NCBI GenBank assembly: GCA_004431415.1
Contig: QPMI01000524.1
Coordinates: 62,001-126,000 of the forward strand
From: Cyanophora paradoxa CCMP329
Taxonomy: Eukaryota; Plantae; Glaucophyta
DNA length: 64,000 nucleotides
Reading direction: 5' to 3'
The notes under the pieces are model-generated. The model ran no database searches and had not been told where the DNA came from. It saw only the letters and a program-made list of their open reading frames with translations. Shown here in pieces: positions 29,554 to 49,037 of this stretch (within the stretch, counting starts at the first letter, position 1; every line of letters begins with the position of its first letter). The translations under genes and the position numbers were made by a program.

Positions 29554-31934
29554 ATGGCTCCTGCCAAGCGTCAAAGAACAGAGGAGCCGCCGCCGCCGCA
29601 CGAGCTGCAGGCCGCCGCGTTCGAATCCGAGGACGGATCCGGAGGCGCTGCAGCTGGCGCGCCGGCCTCGCCGTTCGACCTGCTGCCCGATGCGGTGCTC
29701 TCGCTAATTCTCGAACGCCTTGGTCTGCGTGTCGCGGCGGCCGCGCGCGCGGTGTGCCGCCGATGGCGCGACGCCGTCGAGGCGGTGCATTGGCGCCGGA
29801 TCGAACTCGTCGTCCGCGGGCGCGCGGCGCGCGCGAAGGCGCTCGCGGGCCTCCTCGTCGGCGCTGAAGACCCGGAGGTCGATCCCGCAGCGGCGGCCGC
29901 GGCTGGCGGCGGCGGGGCCCGGCGGTGGATCCGCGTCGCCGCCGGGGGGTCGCTGCGGCTGGACGCGGAGTACCTCGAAGAGGCGGAGGAGGCGGAGCTC
30001 GAGGAGCTGCAGCTGGCGGACGAGCGGGGGCCGCACATGACCGCCCTCTCCCTCGTCCGCGCGTGCGCGGCGGCGAGCGGCGGCGGCCTCGGCGGCCTCG
30101 AGCTGGCGCTGAGCCCGTGCCCCCTCGTGCAGCTGGACCTCCTCACGCAGCGGGCGCGCCCCGCCTGCCCCGCCCTCCACAGCCTCGCCCTGCGCACCGA
30201 GTTCCCCAGCGACTTCTGCGCGGACTGCCTGCAGCCGTCGACCCTGCCCTGGCTCCTCCGCCCCTTCCCCCGCCTCACCAGCCTCGCCCTCCCCGAGTGC
30301 TGCGCCCTCGACGAGGACGCGGTTGCCGCCCTCGCCCGCTCCCGCCCGCGGCTCAAGCGGGTCCGCCCCCCTCTCCCTGGACCCCGTCTGACCTCACCTG
30401 ATGACCTGAACCGCCGCCCTGGCCCGGTCTGGGTCCAGCTGGAGGTCACGCTGGAGTACTACGCGGACGGCGCGGCGCTCTCCGGCCTCTCCGCCCTGGA
30501 GTACCTCGACGCCCGGCTCCAGCTCTGGAAGCTGGACGAGTCCCGCGGGGAGGGGCCCGACGTCTGGCGCGACATCTACCCGCTCGACCCCGCGCCCCTG
30601 GTCAAGGCCCTCGCCGCCGGCCCCGCCGCCCGCTCCTTGAAGGAGTCCGTGCTTGCCCACGCCCGCCCCGCCGGAGCGGCGGCCCCGCGCCGAGCTCAGA
30701 CGGCGCCCCGCCCGCTCTCCCGCAGGCTCTCCTTCGGGACGACCGTGGAGCTCTCTTGGGCCTCCCTCAGCGCCCTCCGCACCCTCCCCGCCCTCGAGCG
30801 CCTCGGGGGCTTCCTCGCGGTTCGTCTTTGTACCCTTACAGTCCCTTACTGCAAACACCACTCAACCCCGCCCTGAACCCCACTCTCCCTCCTCCCCTTC
30901 ACCTTTCTCCCCCCCCTTTCCTCCCTCCTCCAACCTTCCCGGACCCATCCCCGCCCCCCGCCCCCGCCCCCCGCCCCCCCCAATGCCATCCCCCATGCCC
31001 TCTCGCCTTATCCATGCCCCATGCCCCCACCCTCCCAACCCACCCACCCAGCTTCACCTTCCCTTCCCCACTTCCCTCCCTTTCCCCCCCTCCCCTCCCA
31101 CCCCGCCCCCCCCTCCCCCCCCGCCCCCGCCCAAACCGACTGCCTGCGCGGGGCGCAGATGTACAGGCGGGCCGACGGGATCGACCTCTCCGAGAACCTG
31201 AAGGCCTGCCCCGCCCTCCGGAGCCTGCGCGGCCTGCGCCTCAGCCGCGCGGGCGACGGCGACGAGGACGGGCTCGACCAGATCGCCCGCCGCCTCCGCG
31301 GCCTCGCCGAGGCCTTCCGGCGCTCCCGCTCCCTCGCCGACCTCGAGCTCCACCTCGGTCAGCCCTCCGACCCGTGCCCGCCCCGTCCCCCGCCCCGCCC
31401 TCCTCACGGCGCGGCAGACATGCCGCCGCCGGCGGAGGCGCTCGCGGAGCTCGCCGCGCTGGCGGCGGCGGCGGCCCGCCCTCCGCGGCGCCTCGAGCTC
31501 CACCTGATGGTCGACCCCGCCACGGGCTGGGCCGCCGCCGCCGCGGCGGCGCTCGCCGCGCACCCGCCGCGCCGCCTCGTCCTCACGGTCCCCGTGGACC
31601 GTGCGGCCCTGGAGGCCGGCCGCCTGGACGCCCTCTCCGCCTTCGCCGCCTGCCCCGCAGGCGACCTTCAGGTCCCCTCTACCCTCCCCCCTCCCAATGC
31701 CGTACCCCCTGAGCGCAGCCCATGCAGGTCCGCCTGTGGGCGAGGCCCGCCCCCGATGGGGCCGGCCGGGCGGGGTGCGGAGGCCCCGCCGGGGTGCCGC
31801 CGGCGCCGTGCCCCCAGGAGGTGATCGAGGCGTGGCTCGCGGGGCTCTGGCGGGCGGCCGAGGGGGCCCTAGGCCTCCCCGCCGCCCGCGTCTCCGCCCT
31901 CATCGACGACTCGCTGTACGACTGCTGGTGGTGA
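29554..31934 (+). CDS. F-box/LRR-like protein, multi-exon
   Basis: SPFDLLPDAVLSLILERLG...ARAVCRRWR F-box. CPALHSLAL, FPRLTSLAL and LPALERL LRR-like motifs. Basic N-terminus PAKRQR. Confidence 0.8.
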
Positions 31935-32667
31935 GGGCGAGCGCGCCGGCGTGCGAGGGGCCGGCGCTGGCAGCTGCGGATGGCCGTCCTTCGCCGGGCC
32001 CAACTCGCGTTCGCAGCTGCAGCCGTGGTGCTTTATGTGCGATGGGCCCATGGCCAATTGCAGGGTAACGTATACGCAGTGTCCGTAGTGATTGTAGTAT
32101 CATTGTACTCGGAGCTCGAGCGCATGCGCCCATGGCCAGCCTGCTGCTCATAATCATGATCGATATCGATATCAGCCGCTGAGCCGGTCTCAGAGTCTGC
32201 AGCTGGCCATGGGTACGGTGGCCAAATAAATATAATTATAAGGGGCAGCGCCGCTTGCAATTGGCCATGGGACGCAACCCTCATTGATTTAAGAGGACTG
32301 CAGCTGGCGGGTGCACGTGGGCCGGGCGGGTGCCCCGGGGGATATCGATGGAGCCCGGGGGGTGCGCGCGGGGAGGGGGCGGGGAGGGGGCGGGGGGAGA
32401 GGGGGGGGAGGGGCGGAGGGGAGGGGGGGGTCGATCGCGACCCGTCCGAGCTCGAGTCATGATCACCGCGGCCGTCGGCTGATCCGATCCGATCTCGATC
32501 GCGAGTTTCGGATCGACCGCGACAAAAACTTCGGATCGGAACTCGAGACTCGAGCTCGGGTGTCGACAAAAACTTGAGCTACAAAAACAAATGCCGAGTA
32601 CCACGCTTGCGAACCTCCCGAGTCCCTGAATGCGGGAACGAAAATTCCCACGGGTTGCCGCCGGAAG

Positions 32668-33410: not shown

Positions 33411-33428
33411 ACGGACCGTCGGACCACA
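33411..33428. repeat. Left target-site duplication of the LINE (ACGGACCGTCGGACCACA)
   Basis: Identical 18-mer at 49020-49037. Immediately followed by T7 (33429-33435), the poly(A) tail of a minus-strand element. Confidence 0.93.
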
Positions 33429-33912
33429 TTTTTTTGAACAACCTGTTGCATTCGTACACACTTGACAACAGTCCCCCGCTCCTCGCCTACTGGATACTGG
33501 GATGCTGACTGCAGGAGGAGATAGGTGACAAGAGTGCTACAGCTACTAGTCGTGTCGAGCTGGTGCTTTAGCTGTAGTCTACCGAGTCGCCTCCAGAACA
33601 TAATATGCGCCGGTCCTCTAGCAGTGAGCGCGGCATGATGAGCTGCACGGTCCTAGATGCCCGCTTGATGTCTCGTAGAACTTGGCCGTGGTACGCTGTG
33701 TCCTATCTAATAGTGGCGGAGATGCGGTAGGGGGGAGAGTCCACGGTGTCGTCGCGCCCGTCGTCGTCGCCGCCGTTCGAAGTCCAGCTCCGACCAGTGG
33801 GACGAGGCGCCGCGCTCCGAGACCTGCGCCACCCCCCCCCCCCCACCCCCCACCTCCTCCCCCCCCGCCCTCCCCTCCCCCCCCCCCGGACCTCCTTGCT
33901 AGCCTTTGTATT

Positions 33913-35620
33913 TCAGGATGTTGTGCCCCGAGGGGTCGACATGAAGGAAATGATATGTGGCTGACAGGCGCAGTGATGAGCTGAGAAGCTGGCGGGCGTG
34001 TCTGGAGGGCAGAGCAGATGTGGGAGACGGGCCAGGCCTGTGGGGGTGATCGCGTCATGGTGGATGCGACGGCAGCCGCAGGTTGCGCACATGTCTGGGA
34101 GGTATTGGAGTATGCTGCGGGGCTTTCGAGGTTTGCGCGGCTTGGGAGGGGGCGTCGGTAGTGGCATCGGCGGTGGCTTCGGGGGCGGTGGCGGCGGCCG
34201 GGGCAGCGGGGGCAGCTCTTCCAGTCGGGCTGGCTGGCGGCGGCGGAGTTTTTTCCGGGGTTTCGAGGTTGCTTGGCCCGCGGGGGCGCGCTCGCTAGGC
34301 GGCCGCAGAGTGGTTTCTGCCGTCGGTTTCCATTCGCCTGGGGCGAAGAATTTAAAGATGGAGCCCTCAGGGAGCCCCGGAATGGGGTCCGGTGGCGGGG
34401 CTGAGGCGTCACGCTTGCCGCGTTTCTGTCCTGGAGGCTTCCGAGGGGCCGGTGCGTGTTTGCGTTTGCTGCTCGGCGGCTCTGACGGTGTTATCCCTGG
34501 GCGACGTTTGGCGCTGGAGGCCGGGGCTGTAACGTCATCCTCCACCGTGCGTTTGGAGCCAACGGGTGGAGGCCTGCTGGTGGACGGTGGCGGGTGTTGC
34601 GGGGCCCCGTGCTCGTCTCTGAAGCGTTTAGCTGATGTCGGGGGTGCTGCAGGCGTGACTGCAGGCCGTTTCGCTACGCGGGCGGGGGGCTGCGGGGGGT
34701 AGAGAAGGGGTAGTTCCAAGTCGGTCGTCGAGGACGTGGGCTGGGAGGGGCTAGGATTGCGGACTAGCTGGAAGCCGACTCCCGCTGCGCTGTCGACGCA
34801 GAGACCGGTAGCGAGGTGGCGGAGGCACCGGCGGGCGGAGGCAAAGCTTGTCCCGCAGGTGTCGCAGCGAGGGCGTCGTGCGTCGAGTTCGCGGAGGCGG
34901 GCGCTACGTCGGGGGGGCTGTTGAGTAGGTTCCTCTTCCAGCTTCTTCCAGGTGAACGCCGCCAGCTCGGCCGCCAGGGCAGGAGCTGCCCGCCGAGGTA
35001 CTCCGTGACCGTGACTTGTTGGCGTTCGAGCGAGGGGCATCGGGTAGTCGGGTTGAGAGGGATTGGTGCCGGGGCTGGCGTAGCAGAGACCTGAGCCAGC
35101 ATTGAGGCCTTAGCCCGCTTGGTGCGTTTTTTGCCCGACGTGATGCCGTGTTCCTGTTCCAGGCTATGACTGCGTCGCAGCGGGTTTTCCAGATGGTCCG
35201 TGCATGTTCGTCCGCTAGTTGCACCAATCCATTCACTGCTTGCTGCGAGGTCGTAGCTAGAGTTCGAACTCCGAAGGCTCGGAGTAGGACGTGAATTCCT
35301 TGCGGGGCGACAAGCTGGAAGAGAGCGCGAAATTCGAATTGATGAAGGAGGTCGGCTGCTTCGAGAATAGCTAGTTTCTGGCCCAGTGGGCAATCCGGAG
35401 CGAACTCGAGCGGAGGGCTGGACATGCCAGGGTCTAGTAGGAAGGGGAATAGCGAGTCCCAGGAGCTGCGAAGTCCCGTCGGCTTGTGTTTCATCACGTG
35501 TTTAAGGACGTGTTCGCGGGCGGCTAGGCGAAAGACGTTGACGGCAGTAGCAGCAGCAGGGCATACCCAGATGTGATCGAAGTCTTCCTCTGCGAGGCGG
35601 CAGCGGGGGCAAATCGGTCC
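33913..35620 (-). CDS. LINE C-terminal region: zinc knuckle, WxxRC motif, extra Cys/His fingers and Pro/Lys-rich tail (frameshifted)
   Basis: CPRCRLAEEDFDHIWVC (35561-35611), IWKTRCDAVIAW, CDTCGTSFASARRCLRHLATGLC, CATCGCRRIHH. Stop at 33913. Confidence 0.75.
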
Positions 35621-36051
35621 CTCGGGCAGATTGCCGCATAGATGTCCGGGCGCGTGCGAGCACGGACTCGCAGCGTGGCCAGAGATGCAGTCAGCAGTTT
35701 CGAGCGCGTCGCGCGAAGCTGAACCCCGGCTTGGGTCTTGCGGCGTCCATCTTTGCGGTGTGCGGACATGAGGGAGAGAGCAGCGTCGATTTGGCCGCCA
35801 GTGAAGCGCAGGAGTCTACCAGCTTCGAGTTGACAGCTCCACTGAATGAAATCCACGAGGTGGGCTTCCTCGTCCATGTGTTTGCGCGGGTCTCCGTTCA
35901 CGCGGTACGCCAAGAGGTGGCCGGCGTATCTCTCTGTGCCGGTCGGTAGCTCCGCAGAGCCAGGCTTGGTGCCATAGCGGATGAGCGGGGTGGTGGACCC
36001 GCATCCTGCGGGGAGGTATAGAAGGGCAGGGAAAGGCCCATCGTTGCAGCT

Positions 36052-39000
36052 TTTCGCGAGGCGATCGGCCTGGTCGTTGTAGCAGTCGTACGCTGGATTG
36101 GGTACCAGTTCCGCTCCCGGCGCCCGGCGGGCTCGCGCCCGGTCTTTCTTGGTCGGGGCAGGCGCAGGGGCCGGTGGGGGCGATTTTGAGTTCTCTTCGG
36201 CGAGGGTGGCAACCTCAGCTGCGCGGAGCGATGCCGGGCGGGTAAGGTTAGAGAGAATCTCGGCGCGAGGCAGATGCAGCCTCCGTTCTCTTTGCAGTTT
36301 TCCTACGACCTGGGCGAAGGCGGCCTCGTCTGATTTTGGCGGGGGATCTGCTGCCGGATCTGGTAACGTGATGAGCGTTGGCGAGGGAGGGCAGGAGTGA
36401 GCAACGAGGGAGTCCTCTTCGCTGTCGCTTGCCTGCCAGTTGTCCTCGAGTGTTAAGCGGGTCTCGCCTCCGTCGTCGATTTCAGAGTCAGGCGGCGTCG
36501 GCAGCATGCCACCGTGGTGCAAGGTTGCCACCGTTCGCCGGCGCCGGCTGCCGAGCGTTGGAACGCATGCTGTTTCTGGAGTCGCAAACGCGAGCTGATC
36601 CGGGGGAAAGGTGCGGAGCCTATTTCAGTGGTGCCGAGGTAAAGGGCAAGTATAATGAAATGGGTGTAGGTCCGAAGCCGTTCCGGGAAGTCCCGGATGA
36701 GTGTGCTGAGGCGTTGCGTCGACGGGTCACCCGAGAGGACGTAGGCTGTCATGAGGAGAAGGATCCCACAGGAGGAGCGGGCAATCTGGATGGGGCCGTC
36801 ACAGGCGTCTGTCGAGAAGGATGTCCAGAGAGGCGGGGCGAAGGGCTCGTCATCCCTTCGAAGCCAGATTCTGACAAGGTCAAGGCCGAGGGCTGTTCGG
36901 TCGGGTCGGCTTCGGTTGCCGCCGTCGTAGATTCGGATCGAGCGTTGTCTGGGGGCAATGAGAAGGAGGACCCAGTGGTCGGCCGAGTCGCCTTCCGCTG
37001 CGGGAGGCGGGACGGGACCAGAGCAGGGAAGAAAACCATGCGGTACGACCGTAGTGGCCGTGGCGGCAGATATTGCAGGGCTTGTGCTGGGTTCAGGGTG
37101 TGGGGTTGGGCGCCTGCACCGACCGTGGAGATCGCGGTAGGAAGGAAGCAAACGTCGCCCCACGGCACACGGGACGGGCTGCCAGGACATCGAAGAAGGC
37201 ATCAACCACACGGTCCGAGACTCCACGGGGAAGTGCACTTGCAATAGTCCGAGCTCGCCCATCCCTAGGTGCGGGGGGTAGGTCTAGATCTGTGTAGAGG
37301 CGAGCGAGGTCTGCGACGTAGAGGTCCGGGCAGGCGATCGGGAGGGTCGGCTGTCTGTCGTAATGCAAGCACGTGGGAGCCCAATGATGGCGTTCTCCGC
37401 TGCATGGTCGCCTCGGTTGAGGGCTGGACCCCAGCAGATGCGAATTTGGGGAAGCAGAGCCTTCTCGGCTTCTGATAGAGCTCGGGGGAGGGGCGGTACA
37501 GGGGGCGGTAGCTGATGGTTCGGCGCCCCTGCTTGCCCCGAGGGTGGTGAGGCGGGAGGAGACACGGAGCGTGTTGTGGGCACCGGTGAAGGCGGGTCGG
37601 CTAGTGCGGGTGCCGCGACAGAGCCGAATATTGGTGCCGACGGGGGCTCCGGTTGAGGCGGCGTCGCAGACGGATGCAGCTGATCCAAGTCATGTGGGTG
37701 GGTGGGCCCGGTCCAGTCGGCAGGGAAAGAGGGCTTCGGTGGTTTGTAGCCTTGTCCTGTGAGGCTGAGGTCTGAAAGGTAGAGGGCAGCGGCGTATCGC
37801 AGTCGAATTGCCGGGAGGATGGTACGCGATAGTTTGCCGGGGGCGTTTCCGGTCATGCGTGAGATGTAGCCCGAGGCGATATAGTCTGCAGCTGCCATAA
37901 CCAGTAGGGCGTCTTCGCCGCGATCCGCTCCTGGCCAGCTCGGCGAGTTGAGGGTACTAGCATCGCAGAACCAGCGGGGACATTGGGGGGTCGGGCCCCC
38001 AGCTTGCTCCTGCCACGCGTCTGCCCAAGCTTGAAGTTCAGGGAGAACATCAGCGCATGGCGCGTGAGAGCCGTCGATGACCCTTATAACTCGGGTGCGC
38101 GGCGAGATGAGCGCCAGGCGCCAGTGGCGGAGACGTGCCCGACCGTCAGGCCCGGGGACGGGCGGGAGGGGGAGCAGGAGGTAGTCGACGTCGGTCGGGC
38201 GGAGGGTCGCTTTGTTTGAGCAAATAAATTCTGGTGCGCAGTCCGGGTCTAAGAGGGCTCGTCTAGCGGCACGGGGAGTGGCAAAGATACAGTGGGGAAG
38301 GCCTGGCGTCCGTGCACGTTCATGCACAGCTCGGCGAGCGACAAGGCGTAGGAACGCGGCTACATGCTGCTCTTGAAGGGGCATTTCTTGAACGAGGAGC
38401 GCAGAGGCAGCTTCACGGTCGGAGAGCGTGAGAGGGTCACGCATAGATGCCGCCTGCACTTGCTGGCGCAGAGTTGGCGGCAGTGGCGCAGCCCGGTAGT
38501 TTGGGTAGGCGGCTGAGGCTCCAACGGTGGGCGGGGCGGGTGGTATGCACAGACTGCATCTGCGTCTGTGAACTTGCCGTGCGATGGCCGCTCCGGGAGA
38601 ATCGGGCTGGAGTGTTGGGCAACACGGCCGGGTGGCATAGAGTGCAGAGGGGGCGGGGCCCGCTCGCCAGTCTTGGAGTACAAAGTCAAGGGAAGTGCAC
38701 GGGCGGTCCGGGTCGCAGCGGTGGTATGCTGTCGTCGGGTCGCTGGGGACAGGGGCAGGTCCTCGTCCCAGTACCAAGCGGGGCACGCAGCCGGGAGGGA
38801 GCCATTTTCAGCTAGCTGCCACCGAGACGGCGAGGTGAGCCAGATAGTCTGGTCACGCAGGGCTCCGGAGGGTACAGAGGGCCAGTGAGAGGATAGTCGC
38901 GGCGAGCATTCGCTCTGACTGCGAGTGCATCCCAGTATTCTGTGCGCGACGGGCCCATTGTTGGGAGAGAAGCGTCGACTTCAGGCCAAAATATTGGGTT

Positions 39001-39995
39001 AATGGGGAAGTGCAGTGGAGAGTGATTCTGGTGCGATGCCGACTCGGGAGGGCGGCGAGCCAAGGTGTGTAGCGTCGTAGGTAATCGGCTGGAGCCGTAA
39101 TCAGGAGAGAGCCCTCAGGCGGCACACGTGCATGGGCCCGCGGTATGCGAATGGCGTTATTCCAGATTATACATTGCTCGGCTGGGTGTGTCGCGAGGTC
39201 AGGGGCAGCCGCAGCCAGATCGAGCAGAAGGTGGTGCGGCGTTCCGAACTGAGCAAGCTCTAAGATGTCGGGGTTTGCCAGGTATTGTTCATATTCGCCA
39301 AGCGTGTGGGGGGCAATATAGACCTGGGCACGCCCCTCGTCATCTTTAGGCCCGTCATGTAGATAGGCCTTTGGAATATTCAACCCTCCGTAGACACTGC
39401 AGTATTCCCGGGCCGCTGCCTCCGCTGTCGGCGGCTGGCTGCGAGGGGGCGGGGCAGGGCCCGAGCGCGTGACATAGGGACGGGTGGCATCGAAAGGCAT
39501 TCGTGGTGGGGCAGCCCTCGGGGGCTGGTGGGGCGGTCCCGGGTGGGGCGGTCGGGGCTCGAGCTTCGTGAGAGGGATGGTTTTCGGCTCATGGGCCGGG
39601 GTCCATTTAAGAGTCGGGAGGGGGGCGTAGCCTGCTCTTACCCGGGCTGCAACAATTGCACGTATTGCTAGTATTGTGTCGCAGTATGGACTGCGGAGGA
39701 CTTTCCGAAGTAGGAGGGGGCAGCCTGTGAGGCAAAAGCGCAGCAAGATCGAGATCGTGCCTTTGCTGTCGAGCGTGAGGGTGCCTCCATCCTTGCCTAG
39801 ATACGTGAGCGCGAGCATGACGGCCTCAAGCTCGCCAAGGCCGATGTTGTATTGGACTCCGCTGACACGAGCTGAGAAGGTGACTGTGGCGGGCAGCTGG
39901 GAGTTTCGGGCTGCAGGCATTACCACGCCGAACGTCGTTCGGACTGTGAGTTTCCCTGCGTGTCTGGTGCTCCCGTCGGTCCAGATTGAGGTGGC
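36052..39995 (-). CDS. RNase HI domain of the LINE, split by a ~3.5-kb insert
   Basis: IWTDGS (39969-39986), LGELEAV, TLDS and LKWTPAH (39591-39611). The final helix YNDQADRLAK appears only at 36052-36081. Confidence 0.75.
36700..37230 (-). CDS. Ulp1/C48 (SUMO/ubiquitin-like) cysteine protease domain, catalytic residues intact
   Basis: VSDRVVDAFFDVL...RMVFFP...DHWVLLLIAPRQRSIRIYDG...PIQIARSSCGILLL, giving His-Asp-(Gln)-Cys with C48 spacing. Two frameshifts upstream of HW. Confidence 0.72.
37790..38370 (-). CDS. Second Ulp1/C48-like domain, catalytic Cys absent
   Basis: DYLLLPLP...RHWRLALISPRTRVIRVIDGS, but SWPGADRGEDALLVM replaces the expected QxNxxDCG motif. Confidence 0.6.
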
Positions 39996-41487
39996 CAGTG
40001 CGTCCGGTGCCGGCGCATGTGTAGCCTCGATCACTCGAGCTAGTGCCGCCGGCGGGTTCGTTGTGTTCCGGTGGGCCGACGGGATGAGATATGGGTCAAG
40101 GTCTTCGCGACGCGCAGGAAGGGGTGGCTTCGTTTCAGTTACGTCGAGCTGCGCCGCTTCGTCCTGAAATTCTGCCCACCAAGGGGCAAGCTCGAGCCAG
40201 ATGGATCGCGCGGCCCCGTCGGGTACTTCATAGTAGACAGAGTGGGGTTGGGCGTGTGCATCGGCATCCTCGGAGTCGGAGTCGTGCGTCGGTCGCGGGG
40301 GCAAGGATCGGATTCGACGCGGGCGGGGGCCGGAAGCTAAGCGGAAGTCTTGTCGATTCATCGGAAGTCCAACAAAGGCTAGCCTTTTGTGCAGCCTTGC
40401 TAGCCTTTTCTGGACGTGCGCCGCGGTTGAGAGTTGGTGGGTCAAGCTTGCAGGTGAGCTAGCCTCAGAGGCGGGCTTGTCTCGTTGGTTTAGCACGCGT
40501 GGGGGAACAAACAGCTCGTCGGCTGCGCGGCGACGGCGTTTGGAAGGATGACCAGGCGGGCCTGTGGCGGCAATGCGGGCCACGCGGACATGGGTGGCCC
40601 ATTCATGCCATTCGCACACATCAGTGGCTAGGCCGAGGCGTTTGTGCAGGCCGGCGCTTCCGCAGTACGACGGCGCTGGCAGGGGACGAAGCAAGCTTTC
40701 TCACCAGCGGTCTCTGCAATAATTTCGTTGCGTCCGCGGAGCTCTGAGTCGTCGAGTCGCCAGTGGCGCAGGTGAACCATGTAGACCTTTGCGGTTTCCG
40801 CTGTTGCTTCTGGGTCGAGATTCGTGGCTTCGGGGTCTGCGATCAGAGGCGTGGACACGACCTCGGCTAGGTAGCCCGCTGAGGTCCATACCAGCGTGCC
40901 GGGGGTGAGCTTGGCGATGAGGGGGCTAGCGCGGACTGCCTGGCGAATATCAAGGGGCGGGGAGTAGGGGCATGCGATATTCTGCGCGGAGCGGGCGGGG
41001 CCAGTTGGGGCCCTCCGCTTTGTCAAAATGTTCACGTTCAGACAGTTCTTCGCGTAGCCAATCCCACCATTCCGGCTGTTTACGCTTTGTGTAAGGGACC
41101 CTGCAAAGCTGCCAGAGCTCTGACCAGGTTGGGATGCAGACTTCACCGTGAGTCTGAACTGTGATGTGGGCCATCGTGAAGAGGCCACATTCCATGAGAA
41201 AGACGCCAGCCTTGGCTAGGAGGGCGGGAGAAAGTTGGGAAGCCAGGATGAACCGACGGTCAAGTTTAGCTTCTGTCCTGAGAGGCCTAGCACCCATCCA
41301 TTCGCTGCGAATGTCGTCCAGTTGGCGAAGGCATGATCAGACGCGGCTAGAGCCCGTGAAATGGACAGGCACAAATGTGTGTCCTCTTGCCGGGAAGTTG
41401 GTGTGAGGTTCGAGTATTCGTAGGGGAGCAGGCAGAGCCCATGTCGGGCTTGGGTATCGAGAATGCGTTGGCGGTGGAGCTGGCCAA

Positions 41488-43030
41488 TTAGGGAGTCCGG
41501 GAGAAATAAGCTGTCTCGAGCCGGAGCCGCTCGTCGAGTGTCTGAGACTGGAGCAGGAGCGTGGAGACGTGGCGCAGCTGATAGAGAAGGTAGAGTGCTG
41601 GTGTACTGGTTGATTTAGCGTGACCTGCTGCGTGTCTAAACACTTCGGACCAGACGCGCTCCAGTTGTGCACAGCGAGCTGCACTGAGCGTCATGATTCG
41701 CATCGGGTAAGCCAGTTTAGGATAGATAACGCGGTGTAAAACAGTGCGAAATTCATCAACGGAGAGATATTTTGGGCCAAGGAGGTGCATTGCGGTGCGT
41801 GCATGTGAAAGGAGGAGGCGAAATTGGTGCCCCCAGTCAAGCGACGCTGTAAATAATACTCCAAGGACTCGGAATGCCTCATTTGGTTGATGGGTGGTGC
41901 CGATGGGCTCGGCTTGGGGGCCCAGTCCCACTTTGATGGGTGCGAGCGTGATCGGGCGTGATGGCCGCCAGTCCGGTCGCCAAAAGGCTACCTCGCTCTT
42001 CTTTGCATTCAGGCGTATGTTATGAATGTGAAGGAACTCTGAGAGCCACTGGAAGAAGCGCTGGAGGGTGTGTGGGGAATCTGCAAACATCGTCGTGTCA
42101 TCCGCGTAGGCCAGGATTGATAGGAATGAGCGGGGCCCAGCTGGAACTTTATAGGTCTCCCCGGGTCGCGCGGCGCCTGTGGTGCCTGGGACAAAGTCAC
42201 GGAGCTTCCCGGAGGGAGTACCTGGGAGGGGGCCCATGCGGTATCCGATATTGGTTGACCGTGCTTCTTCATCAATTGCTGTGAGGACCGTATCGTAGAA
42301 TATACGCCAGTGAAGGGGGGCTTCGATCCCTCCCTGTGGCAAGCCGCAGCGAACTTGGAACCATTCTGTACGGCCGTGGGGGGTGAGGATGGCGGCCGTG
42401 CGGTGTCGAGCTGCGTAGGCATGCAGCTGGATATATGCGTGGCCGGCCGGGTGTTCGTGCATGCGTAGCCGGCGGAAGCTGGCTTCCATGCTTTCCCAGG
42501 AGACACTGTCGTACGCGCTAGCGATGTCACCGAGGCCAATATATATTGGTTTGCGGTGGTCATGGGCGTCCTCAAGGGCCGCGCGGACCGCGTACAGGAC
42601 TGGGTCGGTAGATTCGTGCCGACGGAAGCCGTAGTTGGGTCCTCGCAAGATCTGGTGGTCTTCCAGACGGGAATCGAGCCTGTCGGTGAGGATGCCCGTA
42701 ACAAGTTTCCAGAGAACTTCCTGTAGCGTGATTGGGCGAAGGAAGCCTAGATCAGTGGCATTGTCGCGTTTGGGGATGGTAAAAACCTGTCCGCGGAGAA
42801 GATGGTCGCATATATGGCCCTCAAGCGTGGCTTTGACGATCGCCTTGATGACCTCGCGGGAGGTGGTCCAGAATTCAGTGCTCGCCCATGCATCAACTTC
42901 AGCGTGGCTGTGCTTAAGGGTGAGAAGTTGACGATCGGCCTTTGAGAGGCGCGGGGGGAAAAAAATCATTTTGAGCATGCCATTGGTGAGGCCTGACGGG
43001 CCGCCGGCTCCGTCTGATGTGGCTGCGAGG
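41488..43030 (-). CDS. Non-LTR reverse transcriptase
   Basis: AGGPSG, TIPK...LRPITLQE, NYGFR, DIASAYDSV, GLPQGGIEAPLHWRIFYD, LAYADD, LNAKKS, FRVLGV. Confidence 0.95.
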
Positions 43031-44109
43031 CGGGCTGAGATTTCCCGATCGTCGGCATGTCTGTCATGCCATCAAATGCAGCAAGCTGGACGTGGGGAGA
43101 GGTGCGTACTGGCGGATCCAGTGTTCGGCTCGTTCGGGATGCGAGGCCAGGCGAGCGCGGATGCGGTCGGGTGTGACTGCGGCATCGCGCGGGTACCAGA
43201 ATCGTTCGTCGAAGAATTCCTTATATTCTGTCTTCACAGCGTGCGGCGCCGTGATAACGTGCACGAGACCGTCCACCAGTTTTGTGAGATAGGGCTTAAC
43301 AGTGCTCCTGAATTTGTCGAAGAGAATCTGGATTGCTTGCCCATCGAGGACGAGCGGGAGAGCATGTGGCGGCGGGCATCTATGTCACGGGACAGTTTGT
43401 CAGTCTGGAAGCCCCGGCGATGTGCATCAAGAGCTGCCATGTTTCGATTTGTCCAGGAGGTTAATGCTGCAAAGTAACGCGACCAGCAGTCTTCGGGAGT
43501 CGCACGGTCTGAGGCGCCCGGGAAAATTGGGGCGGTTTCTAGGGGATGGGTAGTAATGGAGTTCCGTCTCCGGGCGTTGAGCTACTTCAAAATTGTGGAG
43601 TTCAACAGTTTGCTCGAGTTGTGTAAGGTAGTGTAGTGGGGACGAGCTGGAGCTGTCTGCGTTGTCGGGGCAAGTGCCGGTGGGGTCCAGACGTGTCAGC
43701 GTGGCGCGCCCAAGCTGAGAGGCATCCTGGACTTGAAGCAGGATACCGGAGTCATGCTCCTTCGTTCCTGGGGTGAATATTCTTGGGGGCCGGTCGCGGC
43801 GTTGGCGGTATTGGAGGAGTTGGGCGTCGCTGAGGTCAGGCGATTCGGCCGCGTATTTAATTGCGTCCACGAGGGCATTCATGAGCGCTTGGACTGCCCG
43901 CTTGACCCGCTTCGGGTAGTTTGGATGCGTCCGTTGTTGTTCTGTGGGGTGGAGGATGAGGTTTACTTGGGGTGAGGAGCGGGACAACCAGGTCTGGACG
44001 TGCAGCTTTGCTCTGACGCGTGTTTCTGCTGGTTGCGCCAAGTAGGTGAAGACTGGGGTAGGGCTGGGTTGAGGGCGTACGCTGGGGCGCACCGCATTCC
44101 CTTCATTAT

Positions 44110-44965
44110 CTAGCGAGGAGAAAAGCCCTCAATGTTGAATGAGGTGATCACGGGGAAGTGGTCGGAGCGGATTGCGGTCAGGACTCGGGCAGTGTAGAGT
44201 GTGCGAGTGGCCTGCATTCGCGCTGCCAGAGTTTCAGACGCAAGGATCCCATCCAGTCGCGCAGCCGTGTGGAGGCGCTGTGGGGCTGGAGTGTCTGGGC
44301 CTTCGCCCTGGGGCCCCGTCCGAGCAGCCTTAACCCAGGTAATATCCCCTGGAGTGCCGAGGTCGATCAGCTGCCAGTCGTGGAGCAGCGTTGTCCAGAA
44401 ATCCCGCTCAGGGGCTGATTTGCGAGCTCGGGCCGTGGAGATGCGGTCGCGGCGAGGGTCATGGACCGCATTAAAGTCACCCATTAGCACTAGTTCGGTG
44501 TGTTTGAAATCCTTGTGTCTCCAGTCATTCAGGACAGTTGTAGTTAAATATTCCATGACGTCATCTAGTTCGCTCTGGGGAAGTGAGCGATGGGCATGTA
44601 CACGTTCAGGACAAGGAGCCGCTCGGCTGGAGATTTCTGATAAAGAATACCAATTAGGCGGCCGGGACTGAATAAGTTTTGACAATGTCGTGTTTGAATC
44701 GGTTGTGCACCACAGGGCGACGCCTTTGCCGCGTCCGGCCTCGTCAGCGTTGGTGGGGCCTGAGACGTAGAGAGTTCCTTCAGGGCGGGTGCGATGTATG
44801 GTGCGTACGAGTCCTTGCATTCGTGCGCCTGGCAGGCTGAGTTCTTGGAAAGCTGCAAAGTCCGCAGCCCAGGTCCCACGGTTTCGTTGAGAGCCGTTAG
44901 AAGGCGGTCTGCCGGTCACGTAAGGTCTCGAGCAGTCCCTGGACGTTCCAAGTGACGCAGCGAAT
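44110..44965 (-). CDS. AP-like endonuclease (EEP family) of the LINE
   Basis: IRCVTWNVQGL, FQEL, GKGVAL, LNVYMP (alternate frame), LMGDFNA, ITW, ARLDGIL, SDHFPV. Confidence 0.92.
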
Positions 44966-44999
44966 CTCAGAGTTGAGCCGTGGGCAGGCCGCGGAGGGC

Positions 45000-47900
45000 T
45001 GCCGAGGCCCGGCCCCTGAGAACGAAACGTCGTTCATCGTTGGGCGAGGATAGATGGCGGTGTTCTGATAGAAATTAGGTGGGTACAGTTCCCCAAGCGA
45101 GAGGGGAGCTGGAGGTAGCGGCTGGGCGCTCGCAGGGGCGGGGCCGGGACTTTCGTCGTTTAGGTCTTCGAAGTCGGATTCCGGGGGTCCAGGTCGGGTC
45201 CCCCACGGCGTTGGTAGGGGGCCGGGGGGGCGTCGCTGTCAGATGAGTGGAACGTGGCCATGTTCGATTGCCAATCGTCGCTGAGAGGCCTTGTGTCCCG
45301 CGTTCGGAATTGAAGAACCCGGGACGCAGCCCTGCAAAGGGGCGGCGCGCCTTTTTTGTCGGGGGTGGATGTGAGGGGCCGGCGTTGCTGGCTTCAGCCG
45401 CACTGTCTTCATCTGTGTCCGCTTCCTCGTCATAGTCTGGCCATGGAGAGCTCGAGATCTCGGAGGTGCGCAGTCGTCGGGGTCCGAGTCGTAGGGCTCT
45501 GCGGGTCCAGACGCGCGCGGTCGGGTGTCTACTAGGTCAGGGAGTTCAGCATCGAAGCCGTCGCTGTCACGTGCGGCGAGTGCGGCGGTCAGCGATATCG
45601 ATGCTGCTGCCGGTGCAAGCAGTGCCGTGGCCGCCGTCAGCGGGCCCGTCGGTTCAGGGCATGGCGCCGGGGCCGCGTGAGATGTCTCAAACAGGAGGCA
45701 GAGTATGAGCAAGGGTAAGAGGCCCTGCGAAATGTGCCTTGCGGCAAGCACACGCGTCCGGCAGCTTGTGTCCGGTGTGTGGGACTGCAGTAGCGCTTGA
45801 TTCGGGCAGCGCTCGTCGTGAAAGCTGCGGCGAGCGTTGTCACAGCATTCTGGGCGTCGCCGGCAATTGCTCTTGCCAGGGAGAGGCTCGTGCGGAGGGG
45901 GCCCCGCAACGGGGCCCAAGCCAGCACCGTGAACACGTCTCCTGCTGTAAGAGGTCTCAGAAGGGGAGGGCGTCGGGGGTGTGGCGCCCGCAGGGCGGGA
46001 CAGGGGCGCCGCAGGCTCCTAGGGTAGAGCAGCCGTGTGACCGCACGGGCGGTCAGGCGACGCGCGAAGGGCACGAGCATGACGCAGGCGTAGAGGAGAA
46101 GCAAACTTATCCAAGTTACCAGTGCACTGAGGGCGTAGGCGGGGAGCATGAGTGCCAGAAGCAGCCCGATGGCGACTGGGACGAGCAGTCGTTGCGCCTT
46201 TGGCGCGAGGAGGCGTAAGCTCGTCATCGCCTGTATAGAAGCCTGAGCGGTCGCAAACGCTGCAAGGAGGGCTGTGAAGCCGGCAAGAGGCAAGAATCCG
46301 TGGAGGACTCGCGATGGGAGGTCGGCGTCCAGCTTGGAGAACGCAGAGCGGGCATGCGTGTTCATTCGTACGGCGCAGTGCTGCAGTCCGTGCGCAGCGC
46401 GGCGTCGGGTCCTCGTTGCGAGTAGGACGGCGAGTTCGAGGAAGGAAGTGGCCGGTGTAGGCTATGGCTGAGGGCCACCGCCAACTCGTCGGTGAGTCTC
46501 CAACGGCGGCGCCAGGCCTTAGTCAAGAACCAGAGTAGGCGGTCCCAGGGTGATGGGCTCCAGTTTATTTTGGCTCCGCGGGGTCGTGGGCCGAACCAGA
46601 GGGCGCTGCAAGGGGGTTGAGAGTGGCGCTGACAGTAGGCCGGATAGATCGGCCGAGGCGCCGCAGCTTCTCAGCTCCCTCGTCGATGCCTGCCAGCGGG
46701 GCGAGGGCCACGAGAAGGAGGAGGAGACCCCCCAGGGTGAGTCCGGTTTGGAAACGGGAGGGTATGTGCGTGCAGGGTAGTTCTCTTGACCCGGGGGATA
46801 GTAGTTGGGCTTGGCGAGAGGACAGCAGATGCAGGCGAAGGGTCGAGCCGTCCCCCCCCTGAGCCCACGGTTGTGCAGGCAAGGGCCTCATGATCAGAAT
46901 CAGCGATGTGGGTACGTCCGCGCTGAGTAGCCCGAGCAGCCGGCTAGAGAAGGAGAGCAGAAGCGTATTTTCAAGGTTGTCCCCGACACGGAACTGAGAG
47001 GAGAGGTACAGCAGAAGGCCGTAGAGTCGGAGCATCGCGGGCAACAGCTCTAAGGTAAGTAGATGCCGTAGCGACGAGGCGGGGGGGCCGGTGGTGTCCC
47101 GGGGGCTACGGGCTTCAGGGCGGGGGTGCCTGCTGCATTCGAGCGCCGAGCAGTAAAAGTCTGGTCGGGCTCGAGGGCCGGGGGCCGCCGGCTGGTGGCG
47201 TATACACGACGGGCCTTGTCCCTGCAGCTTCGCGGTCGCTTCGAGTTCCGGTACCAGCGCGCGCGCCAGCATCTTCGAGGCCTGGAGAGGCTACGCGGTG
47301 CGCGACAGTCGACGCGTAGGCGGGGTCTGCTAGCTTGTGTTCTAGTGTCGGGGCTATAGCTAGCGCTGACGCCCTAGCGACTTCGCGCGCGAATACAGGG
47401 GCTGTATCGAGACCTGGTGCGCTAGCGCCAACTTTCCGGGTATTTGGCATGTTAATGTACCGGGCTAACGGTGATTGGTGTTTGGCGAGCGAATCAGATG
47501 CTAGGGCGTACTCGGCTGGAAAGGAGTTTTTTTCTCGTCTGAGCAACGCCTCCCGCGGCCGGGATGCAGGCGACGGGACAGGGGGAAGAGGCTCGCCCGG
47601 GGTAGGAGCGAGCGGCTCGCCTAAGCGCAGGCTTGTACGCCAGCGTCGGCGGCCCTGTGCGGGTGAGGAGGCGTTCGAGTTACCCAGTGACGCCCAAGCT
47701 AGTTCCTTGGTTGCTGGGGCCCATTCCGGCGGCTTCCGGGGACCGTGGACTGCAGCCGCTGGCCGGGAGCCATGGTAGTCTGTCCGGGCCGTTGAGGAGT
47801 CGTCGGTGTGCTCCGTACCGGGGCTAGGCTGCAGCTCAGGCGGTGCAGGCGCACACGCAAGGTGGATGCCGTGCTCCTGACCGACGCGTTGCGATGGAGC

Positions 47901-48041
47901 GCGCCCTCCCGCCTGCACTGGCCGGTTTCTGGCAGCTACGATGCGCCCGAAGAGCTCTACTAGCCCCGAACGGCGTGTTCCGGTCTGCGCCGCTGCCATG
48001 TTGCGGCCGTAGCTGACCGCCTCTCGCATTGTTAGGAGCAC
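45000..48041 (-). CDS. 5' coding region of the LINE with several hydrophobic, TM-like segments (frameshifted, function unknown)
   Basis: Overlapping ORFs 47115-48041, 46565-47272, 45637-46365 and 45239-45919. Hydrophobic runs include LLVPVAIGLLLALMLPAYALSALVTWISLLLLYACVMLVPF and GLLPLLILCLLFETSHA. Confidence 0.45.
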
Positions 48042-48543
48042 GGCCCGCGGGGCGAGGGCGAAGGCTCTTCCTCTACCGAGCTCCAGGTGGGCTCCACCTC
48101 GGGCAGCCCCGAGGCCGGGCTGAGCCGCGCGCAGGGGTCGAGTCGCTCAGCCGGCGAGACGGGGCGGTGAGGGCAGCACGAGGACCCGTGCCCGCGAGGG
48201 GTCCGCTTGGGCTCCCGACGGGGTCCTTGTCGGTCCTTCCTCGGCCCCGACCGCGGTACGCCTCCCGCGGCTGGCGTTGGGGCGGGGCTGACAGTTGCTC
48301 GCAGATCGGAAGGCGAGGCGCGCGAGAGCGATGGGGCGGGCACACAGGGAGGGCCCTCAGTGCGCCGCGCTTCATTCTTGATTACAGTGAGCGTCCGCCG
48401 GGCGGGCGCCGGGGCGTGGTTGACAGCCGCTCGCGGGTCAGGGGCGAGGCGCGCGAGGACGACGGCTCGGGCGCGCTGGGGGGTCCGCGGTACGCTGCGT
48501 GTCAGCCTCGATCTCGGTGAGCGCACGCACGGTGGGCGCCGGG

Positions 48544-49023
48544 CCGTAGCTGACCGCCCCTCGCAGTGCTAGGAGCGAGACCCGCGAGGGCGAGGGCGAG
48601 GGCTCGGGCGTGCGGGGGAGGGGCTCGGCGCGCAGCGTTTCGGCCTCGATCGCGGTAAGCGCCCGCACGGCTGGCGCCGGGCCGTGGCTGATCGCCTCTC
48701 GCAGTGCTAGGAGCGAGACCCGCGAGGCGAGGGCGAGGGCTCGGGCGCGCCGGGGGGGCCTCGGCGCGCAGCGTTTCGGCCTCGATCGCGGTGAGCGCCC
48801 GCACGGTGGGCGCCGGCGCGCCCGAGCCCTCGCCCTCGCCCCCGCGGGTCTCGCTCCTAGCACTGCGAGAGGCGGTCAGCTACGGCCCGGCGCCAGCCGT
48901 GCGGGCGCTCACCGCGATCGAGGCCGAAACGCTGCGCGCCGAGCCCCTCCCCCGCATGCCCGAACCCTCGCCCTCGCCCTCGCGGGTCTCGCTCCTAGCA
49001 CTGCGAGAGGCGGTCAGCTACGG
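48544..49023. repeat. ~210-bp inverted repeat built from 138-bp monomers at the LINE 5' end
   Basis: Arms at 48544-48753 and 48813-49023. Monomer anchor TCGCAGTGCTAGGAGCGAGACC at 48561 and 48699. A degenerate copy lies at ~48006-48067. Confidence 0.9.
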
Positions 49024-49037
49024 ACCGTCGGACCACA
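49020..49037. repeat. Right target-site duplication of the LINE
   Basis: ACGGACCGTCGGACCACA, identical to 33411-33428. Confidence 0.93.

Follow-up and report, generated by a model that had tools for sequence, protein, structure and literature searches.

How does the ribonuclease H (RNase H) of a retrotransposon come to harbour a pair of protease domains inside its own fold? This question is raised by a retrotransposon that lacks long terminal repeats (a non-LTR retrotransposon), or long interspersed nuclear element (LINE), of the glaucophyte Cyanophora paradoxa CCMP329, which lies on the minus strand of a 64,000-nucleotide stretch of contig QPMI01000524.1 (assembly GCA_004431415.1, positions 62,001 to 126,000 of the forward strand). 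We call the whole of this stretch the window and give all coordinates in its numbering. A sequence-only reading of the window had proposed that the RNase H of the element is interrupted by an insert bearing tandem domains of the C48 (Ulp1-like) protease family. The proposal stands: contigs from four sequencing runs restore a single open reading frame (ORF), and the same layout is conserved in P0020, a distant relative from a metagenome. ORF2 of the element runs in the order apurinic/apyrimidinic endonuclease (APE), reverse transcriptase (RT), RNase H from beta1 to the His loop, insert, last RNase H helix, CCHC knuckle and tail; within the insert, a Pro-rich linker is followed by a domain that we name X1, a C48-like copy without its nucleophile (the dead copy), a C48 copy with a complete catalytic set (the live copy) and a second linker. 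The explanation as a whole, comprising a split RNase H, an insert under selection and a putative function for it, is in our judgement probable.

The N-terminal part of the RNase H, delimited by motifs and conservation, comprises 154 residues at 39579-40040. It contains the motifs WTDGS (39983-39969), ELEAV (39833-39819), TLDS (39776-39765) and, in the His loop, KWTPAH (39608-39591), with catalytic codons for Asp at 39977-39975, Glu at 39833-39831, Asp at 39770-39768 and His at 39593-39591. The spacing between these residues is 48, 21 and 59, as against 38, 22 and 54 in Escherichia coli RNase HI. The last helix of the fold, YNDQADRLAK with its catalytic Asp at 36066-36064, is displaced to 36052-36081. 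The distance from the conserved His to this Asp is 3,527 nucleotides, which together with ten bases missing from the assembly makes about 1,179 codons, compared with 10 residues in E. coli RNase HI. Both halves of the original description, the contiguity of the first three acidic motifs with the His loop and the restriction of the last helix to this one site, are borne out: the pattern N[DE]x[AV]Dx[LIVM]A[KR] has a single match among the 127,996 six-frame codons of the window, which is the YNDQADRLAK site, and no NxxAD helix follows KWTPAH in any of the three frames, a Pro-rich linker standing there instead.

As assembled, the window has stops at 38853-38855, 38808-38810 and 37284-37286 and several frame changes within the block between the two RNase H parts. 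We compared the region 35500-40100 with Logan contigs from four runs (X1, X2, X3 and X5) of different samples and studies. Single-base undercalls, where the reads carry an extra G or C, lie behind 39003, 38869, 38744, 38608, 38532, 37327, 37157, 36994, 36601 and 35623. At the first nine of these sites (39003 to 36601) the extra base is found in all four runs at full depth, at 36601 in most contigs; at this site, which lies behind the core of the live C48 domain, some runs have both contigs that carry the base and contigs that lack it, as do three runs at the tenth site, 35623. One further gap falls within 38196-38715, its exact site not being itemized. Every undercall site coincides with a frame change, and advancing the frame by one at each of them leaves no stop between 40700 and 35624. 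Because the four runs add a G or C at each frame change, the breaks in the window are consensus undercalls rather than decay, and the true element has one open frame over 40700-35624. The frameshift repair that the sequence-only reading had called for is thereby rendered unnecessary, the frameshifts being errors of assembly. Independent contigs agree fully with the window over the N-terminal part of the RNase H (39004-40065) and over the helix region (35624-36135). In the searches that follow, all pieces were used by reference, each in its own frame.

The undercalls amount to 11 places in 4.6 kb, or about one G or C per 400 nucleotides. If this rate holds genome-wide, intact genes and elements in the Cyanophora assembly will look frameshifted, and other sequences called degenerate there may be artefacts.

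Two proteins alone, P0020 and P0021, came from a full HMMER scan that covered 1.84 billion representatives and had a 615-residue stop-free segment as its query. P0020 is a stop-free ORF of 3,720 residues (11.2 kb) on an 11.9-kb environmental metagenome contig (L001; ENA ERZ27275054, k141_121716) of 58.7% G+C, apparently an intact relative, the contig being cut about 300 nucleotides upstream of where the ORF begins. Its colinearity with the window element extends over all ten segments, its APE and RT are recognized by Pfam, and its homology tracks the corrected frames through the motifs NPIF.E.D, PAWYWDEDL and AYHRC. Identity to the window element is 31% in the APE, 52% in the RT, 32% in the RNase H region, 36% in the live C48 domain and 42% in the helix with the region downstream of it. 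The RNase H of P0020 is split in the same way: LWHDAS, GEVAAT, VLDSKS and EWVASH are separated by 1,176 residues from NDQVDKLAK (residues 2929-2937), the only occurrence of the last-helix pattern in that protein. Residues D22, E70, D91 and H150 of the N-terminal part and the Asp of the distal helix (in QAD) are all invariant between the two. P0021 is a Cyanophora paradoxa protein fragment from EukProt, which aligns with domain X1 and onwards into the NPIF and PAWYW motifs. A word-index protein search with a 613-residue ORF and with the helix-plus-downstream piece gave no match, nor did two metagenome scans with RNase H and RT alignments, and the 19 RT relatives, most of which are Cyanophora gene models, all end short of an RNase H.

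Further copies of the element are present among the contigs, with 24 records at 99% likeness or more, 9 at 95-99% and 14 at 90-95% in X1. The listed differences between the window and these copies are synonymous in 33 of 40 cases, against about 28% expected (P ~2e-12), and in the core of the live C48 domain 20 of 22 are synonymous (P ~1e-9); the codon of the nucleophile Cys varies as TGT>TGC, again synonymously. This excess of synonymous changes implies that the block evolves as coding sequence of the element. The layout has persisted under purifying selection in no fewer than two families, which are 32-52% identical.

Contigs in three or four runs depart from the window at 36816/36843, 38050 and 40094 and continue with more than 255 unlike letters; these are branch points to variants or structurally different copies.

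Could the 3.5-kb block nevertheless be an independent nested element, or a chimera of the assembly? Such an origin would agree with the stops and frameshifts that the block displays as assembled, but these are the single-base undercalls described above, and they are absent from four independent runs. The insert (36082-39590; about 1,179 codons with the ten missing bases) is bounded by Pro-rich linkers at both ends, and neither a target-site duplication (TSD) nor terminal inverted repeats (TIRs), the signature by which a nested element would betray itself, was found at its borders. Contigs from the other runs cross the His-loop border (38993-40065); contigs also cross the helix (35500-36135) but reach only 54 nucleotides upstream of the helix border, which makes no confident bridge. 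An independent metagenome contig carries the same order in one ORF, and synonymous changes dominate in the ORF2 frame. The probability that the block is foreign to the element is in our view vanishingly small. A related suggestion, that the block is spliced out of part of the transcripts so that a contiguous RNase H is made as well, stems solely from the linkers that flank the block, no positive evidence for it having been found. Spliced RNA would give rise to LINE copies devoid of the block, but no joint that skips it occurs in the DNA contigs of the four runs, and the block keeps the frame and evolves under purifying selection; we find splicing highly improbable. We conclude that the surface loop which connects the conserved His to the helix of the last Asp has received an in-frame domain insertion, the block of about 1,180 residues, and that this block is an integral, fixed and selected part of the family, neither a nested element nor an assembly artefact.

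The first domain of the insert, X1 (39006-39440), is conserved and aligns with residues 1815-1975 of P0020 and with P0021 at 32-36% identity; it has no Pfam or PDB match. We observe that in both relatives X1, of about 150 residues, is followed by the NPIF and PAWYWDEDL/AYHRC motifs, which in the window extend to about 38745.

What identifies the flanking parts as an RNase H? The assignment draws on motifs, language-model features and docking. By language-model features, the ten best family-bearing matches of the N-terminal part all belong to RNase_H or its clan, the top RNase_H match having a score of 0.93 with 168 shared features, and the sole PHROG match of this part is PHROG 531, annotated 'Rnase H' (E = 0.097). 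The AlphaFold2 model of the N-terminal part was unusable (predicted local distance difference test, pLDDT, 36). The structural test was a two-chain prediction with ESMFold2, in which the N-terminal part (154 residues) and the helix piece (46 residues) were entered as separate chains alongside three controls. In this prediction the helix docked onto the N-terminal part with an interface score (ipSAE) of 0.62, as against 0.02 for the best control; among solved complexes 51 of 78 reach that mark, and among mismatched pairs 2 of 108. Agreement between runs extends to at least 55% of contacts, and the pLDDT of the partner is at least 53. The contacts of lowest predicted error place Ala17, Asp18 and Ala21 of the helix on Trp20-Ser24, including Asp22, and on strand 36-40, while the wider modelled interface takes in the region of Glu70, Asp91 and residues 147, 149 and 150 of the His loop. 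The helix Asp would thus lie adjacent to D22, an arrangement such as would be expected of an RNase H active site.

The two C48-like domains that had been described between the RNase H parts, one with the complete catalytic set and one without Cys, are upheld by their motifs and by homology to the C48 family. The live domain (36603-37326) matches Pfam PF02902 with E = 4.9e-4 and 20.4 bits, against a gathering cut-off of 20.7, and the same region of P0020 matches with E = 3.6e-3 and 17.6 bits. A profile built from these two sequences matches SENP1 (E = 0.0095), its His, Asp, Gln and Cys aligned with the catalytic residues, and 10 of the 11 PDB sequences listed are sentrin-specific proteases (SENPs). 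The motifs are HW at 36977-36972, YDG at 36929-36921 and Q-x5-CG at 36788-36765, and the catalytic codons are those of His (36977-36975), Asp (36926-36924), the oxyanion Gln (36788-36786) and the nucleophile Cys (36770-36768), which stand in the right order and are all kept in P0020. That the intact copy lies on the same strand as the rest, with the motifs described, is thus correct; as assembled, it is not one open frame, being broken into three frame pieces (37326-37159, 37156-36995 and 36992-36603) with its N-terminal helices in other frames than the core. A MAFFT alignment put the two short pieces in the wrong place and was not used. A low-depth contig present in all four runs skips 22 nucleotides inside the live core (36875-36898); it represents a sister copy with a frameshifting deletion.

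The dead domain (37650-38447) was delimited by its match to the C48 effector NopD, by alignment to the live copy and by language-model features. It retains HW (38126-38121) and IDG (38078-38070), with His at 38126-38124 and Asp at 38075-38073, and has no Cys: the position of the nucleophile is taken by Asp (37913-37911) and that of the oxyanion Gln by Gly. Its profile has NopD as its sole match in the PDB (E = 0.001), its language-model features score 0.94 with 27 of 30 matches to Peptidase_C48, and hhalign aligns it with the live copy in 197 columns that reach from the N-terminal helices as far as the core (probability 92.9%, E = 3.6e-7). In P0020 the His and Asp are gone as well, and the domain is still 32-37% identical between the families. 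Homology of this upstream copy to C48 proteases is supported and a catalytic triad is lacking, so that by its sequence it qualifies as a retained pseudo-protease, most likely an old tandem duplicate of the live copy.

Several observations weigh against this reading and should be set beside it. No curated profile detects the RNase H: its two parts, searched separately, found no match in Pfam (PF00075 or PF13456), NCBIfam or PDB-sequence profiles at E values up to 10, and alignment by hhalign with E. coli rnhA produced only local matches, of SIWTDGST to residues 6-13 (with D10) and of NDQADRLAKS to 130-139 (with D134), at an E value of 0.15-0.24, which is not significant. The docking score is the model's own confidence, and its source may be the fold as memorized by the model and not physics. 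For the C48 domains the Pfam matches are weak, with scores just below the gathering cut-off, and the AlphaFold2 model of the P0020 C48 domain is unusable (pLDDT 41.7). The known members are two full families and one fragment. The comparison of reads covered 35500-40100. Of the listed runs that contain the stretch none is recorded as RNA.

The weak profile results, together with the poor AlphaFold2 model, also leave some room for the view that the RNase H is not split at all, the N-terminal part being truncated or not an RNase H, and NDQADRLAK belonging to a downstream domain. A conserved domain of about 130 residues does follow the helix, at 42% identity to P0020. Yet both families conserve all five catalytic positions, the helix pattern has no second occurrence in 128,000 codons and a single one in P0020, the language-model neighbours are RNases H, and the predicted docking (0.62 against 0.02) brings the two Asp residues together. 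An unsplit or absent RNase H thus appears unlikely to us, and we retain the split enzyme as the working interpretation.

What could be the working of such an arrangement? We hypothesize that two flexible linkers would allow the distal helix to return to the N-terminal part after translation and complete the DEDD(H) site of the RNase H, and that X1 and the C48 pair would then hang beside the face that binds the hybrid and bears the active site. The live C48 domain is predicted to be an isopeptidase or endopeptidase for a ubiquitin-like (Ubl) modifier, the small ubiquitin-like modifier (SUMO) being the likeliest because the nearest profile relatives are SENP1 and NopD. It would putatively act in cis with the retrotransposition complex on SUMO-modified proteins of the host or of the element, whereas the dead domain, conserved despite the loss of its nucleophile, may be a non-catalytic binding or scaffold unit. 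That the live domain serves host-directed Ubl deconjugation is a tentative proposal, to which we assign somewhat short of even chances.

Another possibility is that the live domain processes the polyprotein, cutting the 3,700-residue product of ORF2 instead of SUMO conjugates of the host. The ORF combines great length with many domains and long linkers, and selection on the live domain would fit either role. Clan CE includes the processing proteases of adenovirus, African swine fever virus and poxviruses, which cut at Gly-Gly-X. However, the sole Gly-Gly conserved between the families is buried in the RNase H core (GGT..LDS), no conserved Gly-Gly occurs at the borders of the insert or of its domains when the window is compared with P0020, and cuts at the insert borders would leave the RNase H as two chains. 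The nearest solved relatives, SENP1 and NopD, moreover act on Ubl conjugates. Polyprotein processing therefore strikes us as a minority option, worth keeping in mind and on balance doubtful. More speculative is the notion that the protease pair acts as a gate, in which binding or cleavage of a Ubl conjugate in the loop would control docking of the helix and hence the RNase H site. We give it little credence. Were it true, removal of template RNA and second-strand synthesis would be coupled to the deSUMOylation of repair factors or chromatin at the integration site, and the element would possess a built-in counter-silencing device and licensing switch analogous to the coupling of HNH and RuvC in Cas9.

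The C48 domain in itself has precedents among non-LTR retrotransposons. NeSL and Utopia-1_TSP, from nematodes, have an Ulp1-like C48 protease within the ORF (PMC4640811). They resemble the Cyanophora element as LINEs with a C48 domain, but theirs is a single N-terminal protease upstream of the RT in elements with a restriction-like endonuclease (RLE) and no RNase H, whereas the Cyanophora element has two C48 copies, one of them dead, inside the RNase H and downstream of the RT, with an APE first. Starting with an APE and bearing its C48 domains behind the RT, the element does not belong with NeSL and Utopia. Closer in scale is the cryptophyte Dualen-1_GCr of the Dualen/RandI group, for whose 5,287-residue ORF the domains SET, C48, APE, RT, RNase H, CCHC and RLE are listed (PMC5029228). 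The two share a giant single ORF, and the Cyanophora RT, too, is closer to solved RTs of the R2 type than to those of the L1 type. They differ in that Dualen-1_GCr has its C48 domain ahead of the APE beside SET and an RLE after the CCHC, provided that the list of domains follows the sequence order. With an APE present and no RLE found after its CCHC knuckle, the element was not assigned to Dualen/RandI.

Outside the LINEs, KI-MULEs also carry an Ulp1 domain. Ginger2/TDD DNA transposons do so as well (for Ginger, PMC2836005). What these elements have in common with ours is the recurrent capture of C48 domains by mobile elements; they belong to another element class, their domain is terminal or in a separate ORF, and it has no link to an RNase H.

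Splitting of the fold has its own parallels. RNase H-like folds are split before the helix of the last carboxylate in the RuvC domain of Cas9, by HNH, and in transposases of the hAT, P-element and RAG1/Transib types, by an 'insertion domain'; the insert of Cas9 is an enzyme in its own right, the state of which gates the RuvC site. By analogy, after a large inserted domain the chain would come back to the fold with the helix that bears the last acidic residue of the Cyanophora RNase H. Unlike it, Cas9 and the transposases are of the RuvC and DDE branches and not type-1 RNases H, their inserts are not proteases, and none is the RNase H of a retrotransposon. With E. coli RNase HI and the type-1 RNases H of LINEs the Cyanophora enzyme shares the order and spacing of D-E-D-H and the N-x-x-(A/C)-D-x-L-A helix, while its sequence is too divergent for PF00075 or PF13456. 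No retroelement is known to us whose type-1 RNase H carries an insert of this sort, and full-text searches of the literature found none; in all the LINE cases described, to our knowledge, the captured domain was added at an end.

The element as a whole spans 33429-49019 (15,591 nucleotides), as delimited by exact 18-nucleotide TSDs, ACGGACCGTCGGACCACA at 33411-33428 and its identical copy at 49020-49037, and by colinearity with P0020. It ends in an A7 tail (33429-33435; T on the plus strand). With its exact TSD and poly-A tail it is one young copy of a giant-ORF APE-type element, and no second copy lies within the window. The APE-type endonuclease (44113-45033; Pfam Exo_endo_phos, E = 6.2e-4) is 31% identical to residues 42-304 of P0020, where Exo_endo_phos scores E = 8.1e-8. 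The RT (41491-43071; RVT_1, E = 2.3e-21) is 52% identical to that of P0020. Among solved structures R2 RTs are nearest to it (E = 1.2e-11), with L1 ORF2p at E = 1e-4, and its closest relatives are EukProt proteins with names in tig000... at 36-43% identity, one of them recorded as Cyanophora paradoxa. A CCHC zinc knuckle, CPRC...H...C, was read directly in the corrected frame at 35561-35611, on the 3' side of the RNase H; its counterpart in P0020 is CPHC...FLHVFTC, and a Pfam scan of the knuckle and the region beyond gave no match. For an RLE after the CCHC we found neither a Pfam profile nor a PD-(D/E)xK motif conserved between the window and P0020, a search that a highly divergent RLE could still have escaped. 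In the C-terminal tail of the ORF (33916-34060), CATCGCRRIHH is conserved against CASCGCRRHYH at P0020 residues 3658-3668, and may serve as a motif for zinc binding at the terminus.

At its 5' end (48005-49027) the element is built from direct and inverted repeats: over 487 nucleotides, for instance, 48540-49020 agrees at 91% with the reverse complement of itself, and 64-nucleotide repeat units occur at 48005, 48542, 48680 and 48824. This end may be a structured or repetitive 5' untranslated region or promoter. G+C content is 66.5% over the window and 63% over the element; just outside the element, 30000-32000 has 73-80% G+C and a strongly negative GC skew.

Mobile elements repeatedly capture host enzymes of chromatin and of modifier pathways, among them C48 proteases, SET domains, DNA methyltransferases and methyl-CpG-binding domains (MBDs), and the layout described here, which is real, conserved and under selection, is yet a variation on known themes. 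What the Cyanophora element adds is a pair of enzyme domains nested in another enzyme, at the loop beside its active site, and consisting of a live and a dead protease of which the dead member has been retained. It offers a case from nature in which a type-1 RNase H has undergone domain-in-domain insertion, and a tractable candidate for studying the role that Ubl proteases may play in retrotransposons, be it in host deSUMOylation or in self-processing.

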